Sequence record: MW812339.1
Strand: one strand, 5' to 3'
Length of the DNA: 64,000 nt
Shown: one piece after another, positions 22,408-29,155 of the stretch
Layout of the letters: the number at the start of each line of letters is the position of its first letter
Position numbering within the stretch: position 1 is the first letter of the stretch
Translations under genes and position numbers: made by a program
Notes under the pieces: generated by a model
The model's database searches: none
The model's input: only the letters and a program-made list of their open reading frames with translations
What the model was told of the DNA's origin: nothing

Positions 22408-22779
22408 TTACGATAATTCACCCATGTAGATAACTTCATAGCCGAACCATTCGCCGATTTCGATAAGGTACTTCACCAGCAGATGCCGATGACAGAACTT
22501 CCCTTCTGGGCAGTAGCACATCAGTACCACTTCTTCGTTGCGAAGAATCTCTATCAGCTTGTCGGTGTCTTCATCGAACAAACGGTTCAGCTTTTGCATG
22601 TATCGGACGGTATACGCCGCTTCTGCTTCGGGACCCTTGTCAGACTTTTTGTAGTCCATCAAGAAGTCCCAGTCCGGGGCCAGATACTTCAGCCCCGATT
22701 TTACTGTGATGTCTAGCTTCGGTAGGCTACGCTTTTCAGCTACCCGCCACTTCGCCAGCTGGAGTGTCCATAGTCGCAC
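22408..22779 (-). CDS. DUF488-like protein
   Basis: 'LDITVKSG...LAPDWDFL...VVLMCYCPEGKFCHRHLL'; probable GTG start at 22779 (MRLWTLQLAKWR). Confidence 0.65.
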   Translation of the reverse strand: MRLWTLQLAKWRVAEKRSLPKLDITVKSGLKYLAPDWDFLMDYKKSDKGPEAEAAYTVRYMQKLNRLFDEDTDKLIEILRNEEVVLMCYCPEGKFCHRHLLVKYLIEIGEWFGYEVIYMGELS

Positions 22780-23743
22780 TTGCTTTTGCACGCTCTGTTC
22801 GCTCCTTTTCTTTTTTCTGCAAGGCTTTGAAGTCGGCTTGATGGTACAACCACTCCGCAGCGCTATACGACCGGATATGTAGACGGTCACCCTCACGGTG
22901 GAAATAATACTGCGGGTAGTCTCTACGGAAGGGGCGATAACGCGCGGCCAGTGGAACATCAAGACCCATCAGCGAAATAGACTCACCTAGCTGGGAACAC
23001 CAAAAACGACGGTACCCATCGTTCATTCGGATGCGCCAAGCGACTGCCGGTTCAATGCCAATGCTACGGTAATACTCAGATTTCGCGCATGGCGTCGCAG
23101 TCACCAACAGACTCATCCCGTCACGGTCGTAAGCAAATTCGTAGTTGTTGTAATTGCTGACCTGAATCAACTCTCTGATGTCAGGAGGTAGCTCTCGCCA
23201 CATCTCGAATTTGTCCTTGTCCCAAGCCGGTGTTTGAAGTGGTGGGATGCGACCAGGGTGGTCCTGGAAATACATCAGCTCGCTGTACAGGTTTTTCATC
23301 CGGGCGTATTCGTCCAAAGACCAATCCCCCATCGTCATGCTGTTCTCCAGCGCATCCATTTTATTCCAACCTAACCAAGCGGTGGAATGGTACTGCCTGC
23401 GAGTAATGCGGTGCATTAACTTCGCCAGTCCCTGAATCACATTACCTTGCTGGATTAACGGCGACCACTCATTCGGGTACGATTTACCCGTAAACGGTTC
23501 GAAATTGTTCTCATTGAGAACTGCCCAGGTGACATAATCGACGTTCACGTCATGTTTGTCCACCAGACGCTCTACAATCGCCACACTGAAGAGCATCTCC
23601 ATGAAGTTGGAGTTACCCCCGTTATACATGGAGAAGTATGCAGGGCGTACGTAATGCGCCTCATTGGGCACACCCTTACACATCAGTTGATACATGATCC
23701 ATGTTGAATCCAGCCCCGCCGAGAAAGAAACTAGTTTAGTCAT
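22736..23743 (-). CDS. QueC-like PP-loop ATPase (adenine nucleotide alpha-hydrolase fold)
   Basis: 335 aa; N-terminal LVSFSAGLDST PP-loop; 'LQTPAWDKDKFEMW' resembles QueC 'ETPLMWIDKAETW'; no Cys4 zinc motif. Confidence 0.65.
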   Translation of the reverse strand: MTKLVSFSAGLDSTWIMYQLMCKGVPNEAHYVRPAYFSMYNGGNSNFMEMLFSVAIVERLVDKHDVNVDYVTWAVLNENNFEPFTGKSYPNEWSPLIQQGNVIQGLAKLMHRITRRQYHSTAWLGWNKMDALENSMTMGDWSLDEYARMKNLYSELMYFQDHPGRIPPLQTPAWDKDKFEMWRELPPDIRELIQVSNYNNYEFAYDRDGMSLLVTATPCAKSEYYRSIGIEPAVAWRIRMNDGYRRFWCSQLGESISLMGLDVPLAARYRPFRRDYPQYYFHREGDRLHIRSYSAAEWLYHQADFKALQKKEKERTERAKASATMDTPAGEVAGS

Positions 23744-24084
23744 TACTTTTCCTCTACTAGCTTCTGTCTCTCCACACGCATCAACCTGGCATTCAGGTCA
23801 ACCATGTATTCTTTTTTCTCCATTATCGTGGCCTCGTAGCCACGACTACCCATCGTGAGGATGATTTTACCCTGGCGCAATGCAATCTCACGTGCGGTAT
23901 CACGACATACTTCAAGAGCTTCATCCAGATCGTTGAAGGTGGTCTTCTGCGGACCGTTAAAGGTTTTAGCGCATTCCAGGAATACACGTTCGTAAACGTC
24001 CTGGTCGATGATGAGTGGTTTGTCTTCGGCATGGACAACCATAGGCGCAACCAGTGCGCCTAACAGAACTAAAACTTTCTTCAC
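23743..24084 (-). CDS. Secreted/periplasmic hypothetical protein
   Basis: 113 aa; signal peptide MKKVLVLLGALVAPMVVHA|ED. Confidence 0.7.
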   Translation of the reverse strand: MKKVLVLLGALVAPMVVHAEDKPLIIDQDVYERVFLECAKTFNGPQKTTFNDLDEALEVCRDTAREIALRQGKIILTMGSRGYEATIMEKKEYMVDLNARLMRVERQKLVEEK

Positions 24085-24094
24085 TTAATGCTCC

Positions 24095-24307
24095 TTACGA
24101 GAATAACGTTTGACCAGGTATCAGCGCAGTGAGCGCCCACACGTGGATTTTCCAGCAGATGTACATGACAACGATTTCGAACAACACGCCGTACCAGTCA
24201 CCAGCCTTGAGTTCTTTCACCGCTTCAATGCTGCGATATAACGCGGTAGAGCCGCTAATCACCATCACTGCCCAGTAGAAGAGTTCAATCATCCGATTAA
24301 ATCCCAA
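24095..24307 (-). CDS. Small membrane protein (2 TM)
   Basis: 70 aa; two hydrophobic helices. Confidence 0.6.
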   Translation of the reverse strand: MGFNRMIELFYWAVMVISGSTALYRSIEAVKELKAGDWYGVLFEIVVMYICWKIHVWALTALIPGQTLFS

Positions 24308-24738
24308 GAAATGATTTTGTCCACCTCGCCCTTCGCATTAGTTAATGCACGCAGAGCAAAGACTGGTTCGGCTTTCTCTTCTTTCAACAGGTCGCGTAGC
24401 ACCGAGGCATGTTTACCCCATGGGCGCAACTCTGCAGTTACTTGACGTTGGTCTACGCGAATATTGGACAGGGCACCACAGATGTTGTCCTGACGTACCG
24501 CAGACTGGCGACAGATGAAGCGATCGCTATCGACCGGATTCAGCACGTTCAGGTAAGACAGGTCAGGCTGACCGAACTCGCAGAAGACGCGAGGTTGACG
24601 CAGTAGCCCTTTCGTTAAAGAACGTGCAGTGGCTTCTGGTGCGTACACCACACCGTTTGCATTAGGTTTAGACATGTCCAACAGACGTACCATCCAGTAA
24701 GCGTCCGATTCCCCATTAACTACTTTTAAAATGTCCAT
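24289..24738 (-). CDS. Prohead-protease-fold protein (T4 gp21/phiKZ gp175-like), catalytic residues apparently lost
   Basis: 149 aa; PNANGVVY, EFGQP (canonical E.GHP), LRPWG, FALRA (canonical .S.R), SWD. Confidence 0.65.
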   Translation of the reverse strand: MDILKVVNGESDAYWMVRLLDMSKPNANGVVYAPEATARSLTKGLLRQPRVFCEFGQPDLSYLNVLNPVDSDRFICRQSAVRQDNICGALSNIRVDQRQVTAELRPWGKHASVLRDLLKEEKAEPVFALRALTNAKGEVDKIISWDLIG

Positions 24739-24748
24739 CTAATGCTCC

Positions 24749-25222
24749 TTAAGCTAACTTGATTGTAGGTTCTTCTAATTCAACGACAACATCCCATGAC
24801 GGCACATCGACGATTTTACCAAACGCGTCTTTGATGAACCGTGCACCCAGGCAGACCTGACCACTGGACTGCATTAAATCCACTACCGCATCCCGATACG
24901 GACCTGACGGAGAAAAGTCTGCGGTGACTTCCACAAACTCAGGAGATACGGAGACACGGGCATTACAGAGATAGCCACCAACCAGCATGTGGTCTATCGT
25001 ACGCATTCGATGAATGATTGCTTCTTCGAAACACGCCTGCGTTTTCGAGAACTCCGGATTACCGTACTCGGTGTAGCATGGGTTACGACGCAAGAACGTC
25101 GTAAATGCTTTGCTGGGGTCATTCTGGTCAGCGAAGTCACTGCGGGGAAGCTTCAGGATAACCCCTGAAGCGTTCGCCACAACTGATGCTGGAATGTGTT
25201 TGATTTCGGCTATCAGTTTCAA
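24749..25222 (-). CDS. Prohead-protease-fold protein, catalytic residues apparently lost
   Basis: 157 aa; EYGNP, FSPSGPY, LGARF, SWDVV align to the neighbouring paralog. Confidence 0.6.
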   Translation of the reverse strand: MKLIAEIKHIPASVVANASGVILKLPRSDFADQNDPSKAFTTFLRRNPCYTEYGNPEFSKTQACFEEAIIHRMRTIDHMLVGGYLCNARVSVSPEFVEVTADFSPSGPYRDAVVDLMQSSGQVCLGARFIKDAFGKIVDVPSWDVVVELEEPTIKLA

Positions 25223-25231
25223 GTATATTCC

Positions 25232-26989
25232 TTACTTTTCTAAATTGACCACTTTCCGTAGACGTTCACCGGTGATGTCGTAGACTGGATACAACCTGGA
25301 GTCGTACAACGCCGGTTGGAAGATAGAATGAACGATGTCTGCCAAACGTCGGGCACCTAAGTCGTCGACCTGATTTGCTTTCACAGTACGTTCTGCAATG
25401 TACTGGTAAGTGTCCATGTCGTACTTGGTCTCGACCCCGTCAGTTTTAAGCAGTTTAATCATTCCGTGGAACTCGCTGTTATCCAACTTACAGATAGCAA
25501 CCAGTGCATTCTCGTCTAACGGGTCCATCGTTGCCCGTAATGGGAAACGACCTTGCAGTTCTGGCATTAACTTCGACGGAGGGGCCGCTGCAAAGCTCCC
25601 TGCGGCTACGAAGAGAATATTCGTAGTGTCGATGCCATGATAGTTGCCGCCCTCAACCAGCTTCAATAGGCTGCGTTGTACGCCGCTTCGTGAAACGTGG
25701 CTGTTTGTGTTACCGCCCTGCTCAATAAGTTTGTCAAACTCATCCAAAAAGACCACCGCAAAGTTCTCAACGAAGTCATGCCCATTGCAATTCGGCAACT
25801 TCTTGAGGTCTTGGCGGCTTATCGTTTCTTTTTCTGGGATGTCAGCTTTCGGGATTTCGTAGCACCAGGGACGCGTGTCCGCGTATTTGGTAAACTCCTG
25901 ACAACCTTCAAATACATCATCCCACCACGCACACCATTTTTCTGGTGTTTCTAACCGACGCAACATATCCATCGTGAACTTCGTCGGGTCACGCGATATC
26001 CAGTCGATGCCAGCGGGTTCGACACCCTCCGTATCACCTTTGAACGTTTCAAACCCATCCCAGAACTCCGACCCGTCTGCACAAGACAACAGTACGTCAT
26101 CGGACATCAAAACCTGACCACGTGAGATGTACATGTCGATGTGTTCGGAGATTGTCATTAACGACATAATTTCAGCCATGAACGATAAAGCCCCAGGAGT
26201 ATCACCGTCCATGATCTCGTCGATACGGTCACCGATCTCCTCGGTCTCCAGCAAATCGGAGATTGATCCGAGACCAAGCAGCTTCTGTATCATTTCCGTG
26301 ATAACAGTTAGCCACTGTTGTACAGTACGCCCACCCAAATCGACTTCAAAGATGTCAAAATCTTCGTAGCCCATCGAGTGTTCGTGACAGTAGCCCACCA
26401 TAAACGCCCGCAAACAATAAATGTCCTGGATTTCCTCATAGACGTCCTGCTCATCGAGGATACCTTGTCGGCGGAGAAGATCAGTGTGGTCACGCTTGGC
26501 TTGAATATCCAATTGACGTTCAGCCGCCCGTTCGTTCATCTCACGTTCAACTTGCTTACGCGATTCACGTTCCCACTCGTCACGACTCAAACGTCCGTCA
26601 CCCCCTTCCTTTTCTACTTTGCGTTTGGTACGCATTTCGATATACCAGTCAGGCAAGTGAACGTTCTTTGCCAAATCGTTCAGGTCTTTACCGACCGAGG
26701 AAACTTCACGGCCCACATAACCCGATTCGGTATACGCAGTCATGTCAAGTTCCAACACCGGCAGACCGAACTGGGTTTTCAGGACACGCATTAAAGCAGT
26801 CTTACCCGTACCCGTTGGCCCCACGATTAACAGGTTCTGTTTGTGGACGGACATTCGGTCAGGCATGTTGAGTTTGTTGACGCGATAGCGGTTACGCATC
26901 GCAATTGCCAGCATCTTCTTCGCCTGCGATTGCCCGTAGACGTATTTATCGAAGATTTTGACAATCTCAACCGGGGTTAAGTTTTCCAT
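25232..26989 (-). CDS. hslU: HslU/ClpY-like AAA+ ATPase with enlarged I-domain
   Basis: 585 aa; LTPVEIV..DKYVYGQ..AKK.LAIA.RNRYR, Walker A GPTGTGKT, pore loop GYVG, Walker B FLDEFDK, SRSGVQRSLLKLVEG, PELQGRFP, LGARRL. Confidence 0.9.
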   Translation of the reverse strand: MENLTPVEIVKIFDKYVYGQSQAKKMLAIAMRNRYRVNKLNMPDRMSVHKQNLLIVGPTGTGKTALMRVLKTQFGLPVLELDMTAYTESGYVGREVSSVGKDLNDLAKNVHLPDWYIEMRTKRKVEKEGGDGRLSRDEWERESRKQVEREMNERAAERQLDIQAKRDHTDLLRRQGILDEQDVYEEIQDIYCLRAFMVGYCHEHSMGYEDFDIFEVDLGGRTVQQWLTVITEMIQKLLGLGSISDLLETEEIGDRIDEIMDGDTPGALSFMAEIMSLMTISEHIDMYISRGQVLMSDDVLLSCADGSEFWDGFETFKGDTEGVEPAGIDWISRDPTKFTMDMLRRLETPEKWCAWWDDVFEGCQEFTKYADTRPWCYEIPKADIPEKETISRQDLKKLPNCNGHDFVENFAVVFLDEFDKLIEQGGNTNSHVSRSGVQRSLLKLVEGGNYHGIDTTNILFVAAGSFAAAPPSKLMPELQGRFPLRATMDPLDENALVAICKLDNSEFHGMIKLLKTDGVETKYDMDTYQYIAERTVKANQVDDLGARRLADIVHSIFQPALYDSRLYPVYDITGERLRKVVNLEK

Positions 26990-26992
26990 AGG

Positions 26993-27532
26993 TTATCCGT
27001 TGTATTTGCTAACAAGTTCACCTGCCTGCTCGTGCGTTAAGCCCTGGATGTTGCCTAGCGCTATACGTTGCAGTGTTTGCGTGTCGAGAACCGTCATCGT
27101 GACCACCAGAGGTCGTAACGAGTAATAGTCAACCGCGAGTTTTGGTTCGTGACTGGATGCCATGACGAACGTAATGAAACTTGACTCGACGTGGCTAATC
27201 AGTGCACTCAGGTTGGTGAACACGGTAGGGTGATCGCGGTCGATAAGGGTAGGTATCCATGTAACTGGTTGTTGCTGAAACACGCGCTGTCGGATATGCG
27301 TGACAATCAAGTGCCGGTCTAACTCGTTGCAACGTACCCGTACGTTATCAGCTACGTCTTCGTTTTCGATTTGTTTCCACATCTCGAAGACCGATGGATA
27401 AGCCAGCGTCCTTGCCAGTTCCTCCATGTCCCACACACCACCTTTCAGTGCATCGTCTATGGCACGGTCCAGAACGGTGTAGTCGGTACCTCGTATTTTC
27501 CTGAACAGATTCTTAAAGCGTTTCCAGATCAT
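26993..27532 (-). CDS. Hypothetical protein
   Basis: 179 aa; coupled to upstream ORF. Confidence 0.7.
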   Translation of the reverse strand: MIWKRFKNLFRKIRGTDYTVLDRAIDDALKGGVWDMEELARTLAYPSVFEMWKQIENEDVADNVRVRCNELDRHLIVTHIRQRVFQQQPVTWIPTLIDRDHPTVFTNLSALISHVESSFITFVMASSHEPKLAVDYYSLRPLVVTMTVLDTQTLQRIALGNIQGLTHEQAGELVSKYNG

Positions 27533-28182
27533 TACCCCTCCAGAATTTGCTCCGCGACCTTTTTGTATTCGTCGGTACGGTTCACACGTTCATCCACCAC
27601 ACAGTTGAATTTGCGATGGTCGACCAATAGCATCATGGCCAGTTCCTGACGAGTCACAATCAGCTTTTCTTCTGGCCAGTGTGTCTCACGCTCCAGTAAG
27701 CCGGAAGCAATGAAGTTCTCTGCCAGTCGGTCATCGGACTGTTCAAGGTCGTACTTGTCATTTGGTGCCGCAAAGAACGCCCAGCCGATATAGTTCGGAT
27801 CATCTTTCCATTCTTCAGGTTTGGTGTGGTTCACCAGATGCATCACGTTTTCGGTGAAATCAGACAACGTGAAGTCGGCTTGTGACATGATAGCGGTATC
27901 CATCTGAATCTCGCCATCGTGGTCGTAGAAGTGACCCATCCACATCTTCCATTCACGGGCATCGTGGAACAACGTTGACGCCAATGCATCACTGACCACC
28001 CGACGAATCTTCGGCTCAACCGTGAAGTGGAAACCGCGTCCGCCATACGGCTGAATACGACGGTTAGACGCGCCAATAAAGGCAATGCGGTTTAACGCAT
28101 TCTCACACGTCTGACGTGCGATTTCTTCGAAGGCTTTAACTGGGCTGTACTTTTTAGTGCGGGCTTTTTTCTGCTTGCTCAT
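27532..28182 (-). CDS. Hypothetical protein
   Basis: 216 aa; basic N-terminus. Confidence 0.75.
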   Translation of the reverse strand: MSKQKKARTKKYSPVKAFEEIARQTCENALNRIAFIGASNRRIQPYGGRGFHFTVEPKIRRVVSDALASTLFHDAREWKMWMGHFYDHDGEIQMDTAIMSQADFTLSDFTENVMHLVNHTKPEEWKDDPNYIGWAFFAAPNDKYDLEQSDDRLAENFIASGLLERETHWPEEKLIVTRQELAMMLLVDHRKFNCVVDERVNRTDEYKKVAEQILEG

Positions 28183-28661
28183 TTTTTGCGGAATACCTTG
28201 TATGCTGCGTCATTAAGAATTTTACGGACCTTGCGAAGAGTCGGCTCCGTGTGGCAATATTCGTAAGTGATTTTCCAGGCGTTGTACGTGTCTTTCAACG
28301 TCAGGTCTTCTACGAAGTACATGGTCTCTAACGGGGCATCGGGATACACCAACCGACACATCGTGATGCTCCACAACGGGGCCAACTCACTCCCCATGAG
28401 TTCATCCATAAACTCATCTAACAGCGGGAGTGCTTCTGCGCCTAAAGCCATGACAATATGGCAATGCCCTGGCGCATTCTTTTTGGAATAAGGGCCATGT
28501 CCTTGACAGGCCCACACAGTGGTGGCTAACGGGTGCTTATTGATAACCTTGCAGGTATCCTCCACACCCTTCTCAATCCACCCTTCATCGAGTGCTTTAA
28601 ACGTTCGTCGTTTGAACTTGTTCAGGTCCCGAAGCCCGACGCTGCCGTAACGCTGCTTCAT
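28179..28661 (-). CDS. Hypothetical protein (TxxxC.GH motif, possibly TYW3-like fold)
   Basis: 160 aa; 'INKHPLATTVWACQGH'; paralog of 28688..29155. Confidence 0.6.
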   Translation of the reverse strand: MKQRYGSVGLRDLNKFKRRTFKALDEGWIEKGVEDTCKVINKHPLATTVWACQGHGPYSKKNAPGHCHIVMALGAEALPLLDEFMDELMGSELAPLWSITMCRLVYPDAPLETMYFVEDLTLKDTYNAWKITYEYCHTEPTLRKVRKILNDAAYKVFRKK

Positions 28662-28687
28662 GCTAATTCTCCTTAAGGGGTCTACAT

Positions 28688-29155
28688 TTAAAGGTCATGA
28701 TTTGTAAAAACTGCGATAGCCAGCCAGTTCTTCAATACCTCTTCTACGATGTCGGGGTCGGGGCGGTAGTTCAGACGAAACACCCACGCAGGATAGTCCA
28801 CTGTGCGATTGTCGTCTTTGTGTAAATACATCATGGTGACGTGGAAACGTTTGCCGAGCGGATGCTTGTGCCACTGACCGACAATGCGGTCAAGTAACTC
28901 TAAGCCTGGCTCGGTGCAAACGAACGTCATGCTGTGTGGTTTACGAGTACGGAGCTTATCACCTTCTTTCCGTGTCTCGCCGGCAAAGGCCCAAACTGTG
29001 GCAATGTGCGGCCAAGCATGAAACGCCTGGACGATAGCACGCATCTTTGGGTCGGTCGGTTTATCAGCACTCAGCGCTTGGGTCGTGCGCTGTTTGTACG
29101 CGGCCAATTCCGCCTCACTGACTACTGAATATTTGAACATGGTGGTGGTTCCCAA
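28688..29155 (-). CDS. Hypothetical protein, paralog of 28179..28661
   Basis: 155 aa; 'FHAWPHIATVWAFAGE...HSMTFVC'. Confidence 0.6.
   Translation of the reverse strand: MGTTTMFKYSVVSEAELAAYKQRTTQALSADKPTDPKMRAIVQAFHAWPHIATVWAFAGETRKEGDKLRTRKPHSMTFVCTEPGLELLDRIVGQWHKHPLGKRFHVTMMYLHKDDNRTVDYPAWVFRLNYRPDPDIVEEVLKNWLAIAVFTNHDL

Follow-up and report, generated by a model that had tools for sequence, protein, structure and literature searches.

The first 64 kb of Erwinia phage pEa_SNUABM_29 (MW812339.1, 248,836 bp), analysed here as one window of 64,000 nucleotides, contain a gene for an HslU-family ATPase without the HslV-docking tail, followed by two genes for small proteins related to phage prohead proteases. 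The reading we favour, with roughly even confidence, is that two unrelated modules are neighbours here in a syntenic but variable part of a Seoulvirus genome, and that the locus is not one three-gene machine. The DNA was identified by megablast of positions 24000-27600, which gives 100% identity at the same coordinates. The phage is a jumbo phage of the fire-blight bacterium, a Seoulvirus, and the current taxonomy places it in the Chimalliviridae. The three minus-strand open reading frames (ORFs), as located in a preliminary description of the window, match the GenBank coding sequences (CDSs) _00037, _00036 and _00035 of the record, Table 1. Every CDS of MW812339.1 is labelled "hypothetical protein", including the ATPase and both small genes.

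The first module would be an accessory AAA+ unfoldase of the HslU family that forms a hexamer, selects its substrates via the I-domain and unfolds or remodels them in an ATP-driven manner. We give slightly less than an even chance to the ATPase working as a chaperone-like remodeller with no peptidase docked. The second module would consist of diverged, truncated paralogs of the type of gp117 in phage SPN3US, which keep a protease-like peptide-binding cleft and may act, independently of the ATPase, as non-catalytic binding or regulatory proteins tied to head assembly.

The assignment of _00037 to the HslU family is based on sequence and on predicted structure. Among solved structures (phmmer against PDB) the best matches are HslU of E. 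coli and H. influenzae, with an E-value of 7e-51, and phrog_4339 is matched at 3.5e-149. The aligned stretches are residues 1-109 (HslU 1-109) and residues 402-565 (HslU 242-411). They flank a gap, and therefore the I-domain slot comprises residues 110-401, i.e. 292 residues compared with ~132 in bacterial HslU, or ~160 more, as the preliminary description had estimated. The description had also reported intact HslU motor motifs with a Walker B motif near residue 416, and the alignments agree: Walker A starts at residue 57, the GYVG pore loop at 90, Walker B (DEFDK) at 416, GARRL occupies 545-549 and residue 585 is the last. Walker A, GYVG, Walker B, the arginine finger and sensor-2 are invariant in the phage and bacterial alignments; the residues invariant with Salmonella HslU and the phage homologs include G57, P58, G60, G62, K63, T64, G90, Y91 and G93. 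The core AAA+ modules share ~30% identity with enterobacterial HslU. Against the NCBIfam hslU model (TIGR00390) the protein scores 226 bits, below the equivalog cut-off of 362.45. A ClpX identity was rejected, as both the NCBIfam score (141 bits against 226) and the best PDB match (1e-31 against 7e-51) are inferior, and the ClpX alignment is restricted to the N-terminal AAA+ stretch.

In the AlphaFold2 (AF2) model of _00037, with a predicted local distance difference test (pLDDT) score of 77.6, the best 50 Foldseek matches are all HslU/ClpY. The I-domain (pLDDT 65-87) is predicted to be nearly all alpha-helical: a long hairpin of helices comes first, then an additional helical bundle. The full-length insert is common only to the Seoulvirus-, Machina- and Wellington-type relatives, and a word-indexed homolog search with the I-domain gave 4 proteins. 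The ratio of nonsynonymous to synonymous substitution rates (dN/dS) between _00037 and its SPAsTU ortholog is 0.065, and the ATPase is under purifying selection. In the same type of comparison the synonymous sites of the two small genes are saturated. A defence-system role was considered and dropped, as PADLOC yielded weak P-loop matches only.

At the other end of the protein, _00037 and its close phage relatives stop about 10-20 residues before the C-terminus of Salmonella HslU in the alignment, in agreement with the earlier claim of a missing docking tail. After the last conserved block the phage-clade ATPases have short, non-conserved tails, whereas Salmonella HslU extends ~16 residues further, and the docking tail is absent clade-wide. 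The missing C-terminal motif of HslU binds grooves on HslV (PMC7468587). Due to the absence of this tail and of an adjacent hslV, it is fair to infer that the coupling of the ATPase to proteolysis is non-canonical or absent.

The two small proteins both match phrog_7478 (1e-27 to 1e-34; 1.5e-27 for the 157-residue protein). With Pfam Peptidase_S80 (PF20034, cut-off 23.4) the 149-residue protein is found above the cut-off (2.9e-8, 33.6 bits) and the 157-residue protein below it (1.9e-3, 17.8 bits). When a profile of ten short paralogs is compared by hhalign with 26 true S80 proteases, the probability is 98.4% and the E-value 5e-15. The alignment spans about residues 30-182 of a 267-residue protease; both small proteins end there, and they are without ~30 N-terminal and ~85 C-terminal residues of the true protease. 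For gp245, the protease of SPN3US, the C-terminal region was inferred to direct the enzyme into the prohead and is removed by autoproteolysis (PMC5694885). Structure prediction was applied to the 149-residue protein (AF2, pLDDT 89.6). The model matches T4 gp21 (5jbl) with a Foldseek probability of 1.00 and a template modelling (TM) score of 0.65, followed by weaker matches to herpesvirus proteases.

The catalytic triad of gp245 is H77, S153 and D178 (PMC5694885), and none of the three varies among the 26 aligned true proteases. In the 149-residue protein the His site is occupied by Gln57 and the Ser site by Ala128, Asp146 is kept and Arg130 is conserved. In the 157-residue protein the corresponding residues are Asn55, Gly126 and Asp144. 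The column mapping therefore supports the earlier statement that both are gp21-type proteins with His and Ser replaced, and the structural similarity to gp21-type proteases is seen in the 149-residue model. On these grounds both are predicted to be catalytically incompetent prohead-protease paralogs, with a structural confirmation from the model for the 149-residue protein. The genuine prohead protease of the phage is _00187 (267 residues, Pfam S80 at 4.5e-87), encoded elsewhere in the genome.

The 157-residue protein matches the SPN3US gp117 ortholog by phmmer with an E-value of 4.4e-26. The similarity between the 149- and 157-residue proteins themselves is only marginal (E about 5e-5); both score 1e-45 to 1e-56 against a 10-member family profile that itself includes both. 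The preliminary description had presented these genes as part of something new, which does not hold: gp117 of SPN3US was described in 2017 as a truncated, presumably inactive paralog, a "cryptic protease" (Ali et al. 2017, PMC5694885), and the HslU-like gene is already annotated as an HslU-domain or heat-shock protein in many relatives. The same paper lists Stratton gp135, Kwan gp144, 201phi2-1 gp206 and PhiPA3 gp143 as homologs, reports two gp117-type copies each in Machina, Caitlin and ChrisDB, and makes no mention of a neighbouring ATPase, an HslV-family gene or a mini-protein with two transmembrane-like segments (PMC5694885). Concerning the presence of gp117 in the virion, the label is missing from supplementary tables of that paper, where 117 occurs once, as a data value; this is a weak negative.

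To describe the family more completely an exhaustive profile search was needed, as a word-indexed search with the 149-residue protein gave 2 proteins. The exhaustive search found 74 clusters at 50% identity. Short forms (n=56, including _00035, _00036 and gp117) never keep His and Ser together (0/56); His alone is kept in 5/56 and Ser alone in 10/56, and 15 different residues occur at the His position. The flanking residues are kept almost throughout: Glu in 53/56, Pro in 55/56, Arg in 55/56 and Asp in 54/56. Among the long forms (n=23) the full triad is present in 20/23. The other 3/23 long S80 representatives are also without His and Ser, and therefore long pseudoproteases exist beside the short ones. 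The loss of nucleophile and base together with near-invariant cleft residues points to a pseudoenzyme family held by selection and not to simple decay, as judged from the alignments.

Could the short paralogs be active peptidases with non-canonical catalytic residues? We regard this as the most improbable of the readings considered. The conservation of Asp and of the flanking Glu, Pro and Arg would fit such an activity, as would the members that keep Ser or His, and in gp117 a His seven residues upstream has been noted (PMC5694885). However, no short form has both catalytic residues, _00035 and _00036 have neither, and a position with 15 different residues is the opposite of what is expected for a catalytic one.

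A structure search found short forms in Phabio (three), 201phi2-1 (two), Psa21, Klebsiella phages, RAY, a Yersinia phage and T4-like Aeromonas phages. Two gp117-class pseudoproteases, Machina gp130 and pEa_SNUABM_8 _00140, carry an extra C-terminal domain of ~80-100 residues (phrog_24315). In the JGI contig Ga0436595_000002 (238 kb), from an uncultured jumbo phage, a 164-residue S80 paralog lies directly upstream of a 256-residue S80 protein. Cultured relatives are arranged differently, with the true protease at a large distance.

The arrangement of these genes in relatives speaks for two modules. In pEa_SNUABM_29 the order is the w38-like gene (encoding the 179-residue protein upstream of the ATPase), ATPase, gp117 class and 149-residue class. 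Stratton has the same order minus the ATPase (w38-like, a 164-residue paralog and a 153-residue paralog), Asesino has the w38-like gene and one paralog without ATPase, and SPN3US has gp117 alone, also without ATPase. SPLA3 has the ATPase and the gp117 class. In Salmonella phage 1252 the ATPase is followed 90 nucleotides on by the next conserved gene and a paralog is not detectable. In SPAsTU the ATPase is placed between two paralogs, in Kwan a paralog lies 1.6 kb upstream of the ATPase, and at the ATPase loci of CR5 and RAY a paralog is lacking within 3 kb. Counted by records, the ATPase accompanies the gp117 class in 22 cases and is missing in 16; for the 149-residue class the numbers are 21 and 5, respectively. 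All four combinations of presence and absence of ATPase and paralog are thus seen among close relatives. As the presence of the ATPase varies inside a syntenic block, it behaves as an accessory gene and the paralogs as independent members of the block, and the present survey suggests independent histories of gain and loss.

The preliminary description had proposed a three-gene system, with the paralogs as adaptors or substrate receptors of the ATPase, e.g. for cleavage-motif peptides or head proteins. The survey argues against an obligate unit, and we consider a dedicated AAA+/pseudoprotease system of this kind improbable. The genes are tightly adjacent and co-directional, their proximity is kept despite rearrangements in SPAsTU and Kwan, and the conserved residues flanking the active site suggest that peptide binding may be retained. 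However, besides the four combinations among close relatives, the short paralogs occur much more widely than the ATPase, being common in jumbo phages without an HslU-like gene, and the constant neighbour of the 149-residue class is not the ATPase. The linkage expected in related phages is therefore found in part: a paralog is often near the ATPase, while Stratton, Asesino, SPN3US and 1252 break the linkage. A related and equally improbable idea is that, in the Seoulvirus- and Machinavirus-type phages with both genes, the tail-less hexamer has swapped its peptidase for gp21-fold pseudoprotease receptors or a non-catalytic cap. If true, the pseudoproteases would recognise cleavage-motif or head/ejection proteins, the locus would be a module for ATP-driven remodelling of virion proteins, and the mini-protein with two transmembrane-like segments could put part of the remodelling activity at the membrane.

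This mini-protein (58-67 residues, two transmembrane-like segments) adjoins the 149-residue-class paralog in 7/7 lineages checked and is a more constant neighbour of that class than the ATPase is. In 4/7 lineages its gene overlaps the 149-residue-class gene by 4 nucleotides, which suggests that the two may be translationally coupled.

The second question is whether the ATPase has a peptidase partner. The earlier statement that there is no hslV holds for the window, where no HslV-like ORF was found; it is false genome-wide due to the presence of _00163, ~107 kb from the ATPase. This gene encodes a protein of 179 residues, annotated as hypothetical, and lies beside tRNA-Trp, one of four tRNA genes clustered there (Asn, Ile2-CAT, Tyr, Trp). 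It matches phrog_1040 ("peptidase HslV family") at 5.9e-35, and Salmonella HslV matches the same family at 9e-23 over the span matched by _00163. The protein begins with Met-Thr-Thr and keeps the Asp, Lys and Gly-Ser-Gly positions; M1, T2, T3, D14, K30, G122 and G124 are invariant in the alignment with Salmonella HslV. The score with Pfam Proteasome is 13.7, under the cut-off of 22.4. Single-sequence phmmer searches of all genome ORFs, with Salmonella HslV, CR5_121 and Machina gp125 as queries, gave no match, and a three-sequence profile then gave a marginal match to _00163 (E 0.02). Since the profile and PHROG both found the gene, the single-sequence negative is a failure of sensitivity.

In the relatives, CR5_121 and Machina gp125 match phrog_1040 at 1.6e-22 and 4.5e-10. 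A direct hhalign comparison of a two-sequence CR5_121/gp125 profile with Salmonella HslV gave a probability of 1.3%, and the link is made via phrog_1040. In the CR5-type and Machina-type phages the HslV-like gene is found 2-2.3 kb upstream of the ATPase and is a second or the sole copy. Orthologs of _00163 occur in every ATPase-bearing relative among the matches listed. The HslV family is present in 182 phage records, most of them without an HslU-like gene, including SPN3US, Asesino, Stratton, phage EL and many phages of 40-50 kb; the peptidase therefore needs no phage ATPase. This distribution is compatible both with a partnership with the tail-less ATPase and with none.

A non-canonical cooperation of the ATPase with _00163 is unlikely in our estimate, and is the next most likely possibility after an ATPase that stands alone. 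In its full form this would be a phage HslUV-like protease, in which the ATPase feeds _00163 through tail-independent docking and the small proteins are unrelated neighbours; we hold this, too, to be rather unlikely, though well short of negligible. The phrog_1040 match, the Met-Thr-Thr start with the kept Asp, Lys and Gly-Ser-Gly positions, the co-occurrence of the orthologs and the gene proximity in CR5-type and Machina-type phages argue for it. Against it stand the absent docking tail with a non-conserved residual tail, the distance between the two genes, the Proteasome score under threshold and the many HslV-family records without an HslU-like gene.

Five observations weigh against our reading of two unrelated modules with a stand-alone ATPase, and they concern both parts of it. 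First, the genome holds an apparently competent HslV-family gene, as predicted from its sequence. Second, the ATPases with a nearby HslV-like gene in the CR5-type and Machina-type phages are equally tail-less. Third, HslU-family ATPases are, to our knowledge, otherwise known only as partners of peptidases. The HslV-like genes in the genome and near the ATPases of relatives weaken the stand-alone reading; the missing tail and the missing adjacent hslV speak in favour of the earlier claim that the ATPase is decoupled from proteolysis. Fourth, every phage record with a full-length ATPase of this type (28/28) belongs to a lineage that normally has a short paralog within ~2 kb. Fifth, the ATPase and paralog genes are co-directional with gaps of 9 and 10 nucleotides and no terminator-like site between them; on the minus strand none was found from ~28084 to 23024. 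Co-expression and some functional interplay of ATPase and paralogs may follow. However, from ~17 to 34 kb of the window all genes are equally compact and co-directional, and close packing is therefore not peculiar to _00035-_00037.

Finally, the phage ATPase might interfere with the host, either by engaging host HslV or by poisoning host HslUV through mixed or competing rings. The host encodes HslUV, as Enterobacterales do, and the phage protein shares with enterobacterial HslU the fold and the level of core identity given above. The peptide for binding and activating HslV is missing, however, and the divergence in sequence is too great for co-assembly to be obvious. In addition, the ATPase of phage RAY is inside the phage nucleus, away from the host cytoplasm (PMC10299810), although RAY gp116 is only ~31% identical. 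We judge host interference very improbable.

The features of the locus and the other genes mentioned are collected in Table 1. All three genes have a plausible ribosome-binding site; _00036 has a TTG start and the site AAGGA.

Table 1. Coordinates of the locus, of the domains of the ATPase and of other genes discussed. Positions refer to the window; those marked "record" refer to MW812339.1, and those with the prefix L are given by locus.
Feature	Position	Strand	Remark
HslU-family AAA+ ATPase, 585 aa, pEaSNUABM29_00037	25232..26989	-	tail-less, enlarged I-domain
AAA+ large domain, N-terminal part, residues 1-109	26663..26989	-	Walker A 57-64, GYVG pore-1 loop 90-93
Enlarged I-domain, residues 110-401	25787..26662	-	gap between two HslU-aligned stretches
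AAA+ module, C-terminal part, residues 402-585	25235..25786	-	Walker B D416, E417; Arg finger R481; sensor-2
Short S80/gp21-fold paralog, predicted inactive, 157 aa, _00036	24749..25222	-	SPN3US gp117 ortholog class
Short S80/gp21-fold paralog, predicted inactive, 149 aa, _00035	24289..24738	-	second class (SPAsTU 148 aa, Machina gp131)
Mini-protein, 65 aa, two hydrophobic segments	24095..24292	-	4-nt overlap with stop of 149-aa gene
179-aa protein, phrog_11712, function not assigned	26993..27532	-	directly upstream of ATPase
Tandem phrog_7413 paralogs	28179-28661, 28688-29140	-	slot of Machina gp125 and gp126
335-aa phrog_8825 protein, then DUF488 gene	22408-23743	-	weak QueC-like similarity (1.2e-3)
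HslV-family protein, 179 aa, _00163	record 133705-134244; L005:20708-21244	-	phrog_1040
Prohead protease, 267 aa, _00187	record 155787-156590		Pfam S80
Mini-protein loci	L011:5907-6107, L012:5939-6139, L013:1355-1558, L016:5514-5690, L018:5048-5224, L002:5734-5937		
Machina gp130	L011:4737-5429		gp117 class, phrog_24315
pEa_SNUABM_8 _00140	L012:4691-5467		gp117 class, phrog_24315
S80 pair in Ga0436595_000002	L020:4001-5262		

The 179-residue protein encoded directly upstream was considered as an HslU-specific partner and rejected, since Asesino and Stratton carry a homolog without the ATPase; phrog_11712 homologs also precede the HslU-like gene in Machina and Kwan. Further upstream, two tandem phrog_7413 paralogs (28179-29140) occupy the slot of the HslV-like gp125 and gp126 in Machina. 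The idea that they are diverged HslV found no support, as they have no similarity to HslV. Downstream, the phrog_8825/DUF488 pair lies just beyond the pseudoprotease block in Seoulvirus, Machina, Asesino, Kwan and Stratton.

Two further observations concern the ATPase in other genomes. According to the paper on pSal-SNUABM-04, ORF 1 and ORF 116 are HslV and no HslU is encoded (PMC7823757). By tblastn that genome does have an HslU-like gene of full length, at 106144-107874, under the label 'putative DnaA protein', and the published annotation appears to be mislabelled. SPLA3-type and CR5-type ATPases are also found on contigs of ~220-243 kb in many NCBI Salmonella enterica surveillance assemblies, and the corresponding protein clusters (P0075 and P0183) have 135 and 85 members. 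From this it seems that isolates are often sequenced together with a jumbo phage, owing to a carrier state or contamination.

All three genes are now placed in known families, and no new kind of system is established. The survey sharpens the 2017 observation on gp117 to a short gp21/S80-fold family of at least 56 clusters at 50% identity, which may have a role in head assembly of jumbo phages. Given the clade of tail-less HslU proteins with expanded I-domains, and given how widespread HslV-family genes are in phages, one may ask how AAA+ unfoldases and peptidases are coupled or uncoupled in nucleus-forming phages.

Compared with known systems, _00037 has the fold, domain order, motor motifs and I-domain insertion point of bacterial HslU (ClpY; PDB 1g4a, 1e94, 6pxk). 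Bacterial HslU differs in its shorter I-domain, its docking tail and its hslVU operon. A phage parallel is gp116 of Erwinia phage RAY, an HslU-like accessory protein located in the phage nucleus (PMC10299810). Like _00037, it is an HslU-family ATPase of a Chimalliviridae phage with the same host and is accessory, not core. The two proteins share ~31% identity over half their length and have different I-domains; gp116 carries a long unrelated C-terminal extension and, unlike _00037, has no S80-like neighbour within 3 kb. The members of the phrog_1040 family include _00163, the SPN3US gene at 1186-1668, CR5_121, and Machina gp1 and gp125; _00163 is not linked to the ATPase here, and the family occurs mostly in phages without an HslU-like gene.

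The small proteins share their fold with T4 gp21, phiKZ gp175 and SPN3US gp245 (MEROPS S77/S80; herpesvirus assemblin fold), and prohead proteases and small proteins have in common the conserved positions Glu-x-x-[His]-Pro, Arg and Asp. The prohead proteases have, in addition, the His, the Ser and the N- and C-terminal extensions that the small proteins are without. The nearest relatives are those of the gp117 family, of which the 157-residue protein represents the direct ortholog class and the 149-residue protein the same wider family. In both cases the protein is truncated to the catalytic core and presumed inactive, with the full-length protease elsewhere in the genome. They differ in one respect: gp117 keeps Ser and Asp, whereas _00035 and _00036 have also lost the Ser.

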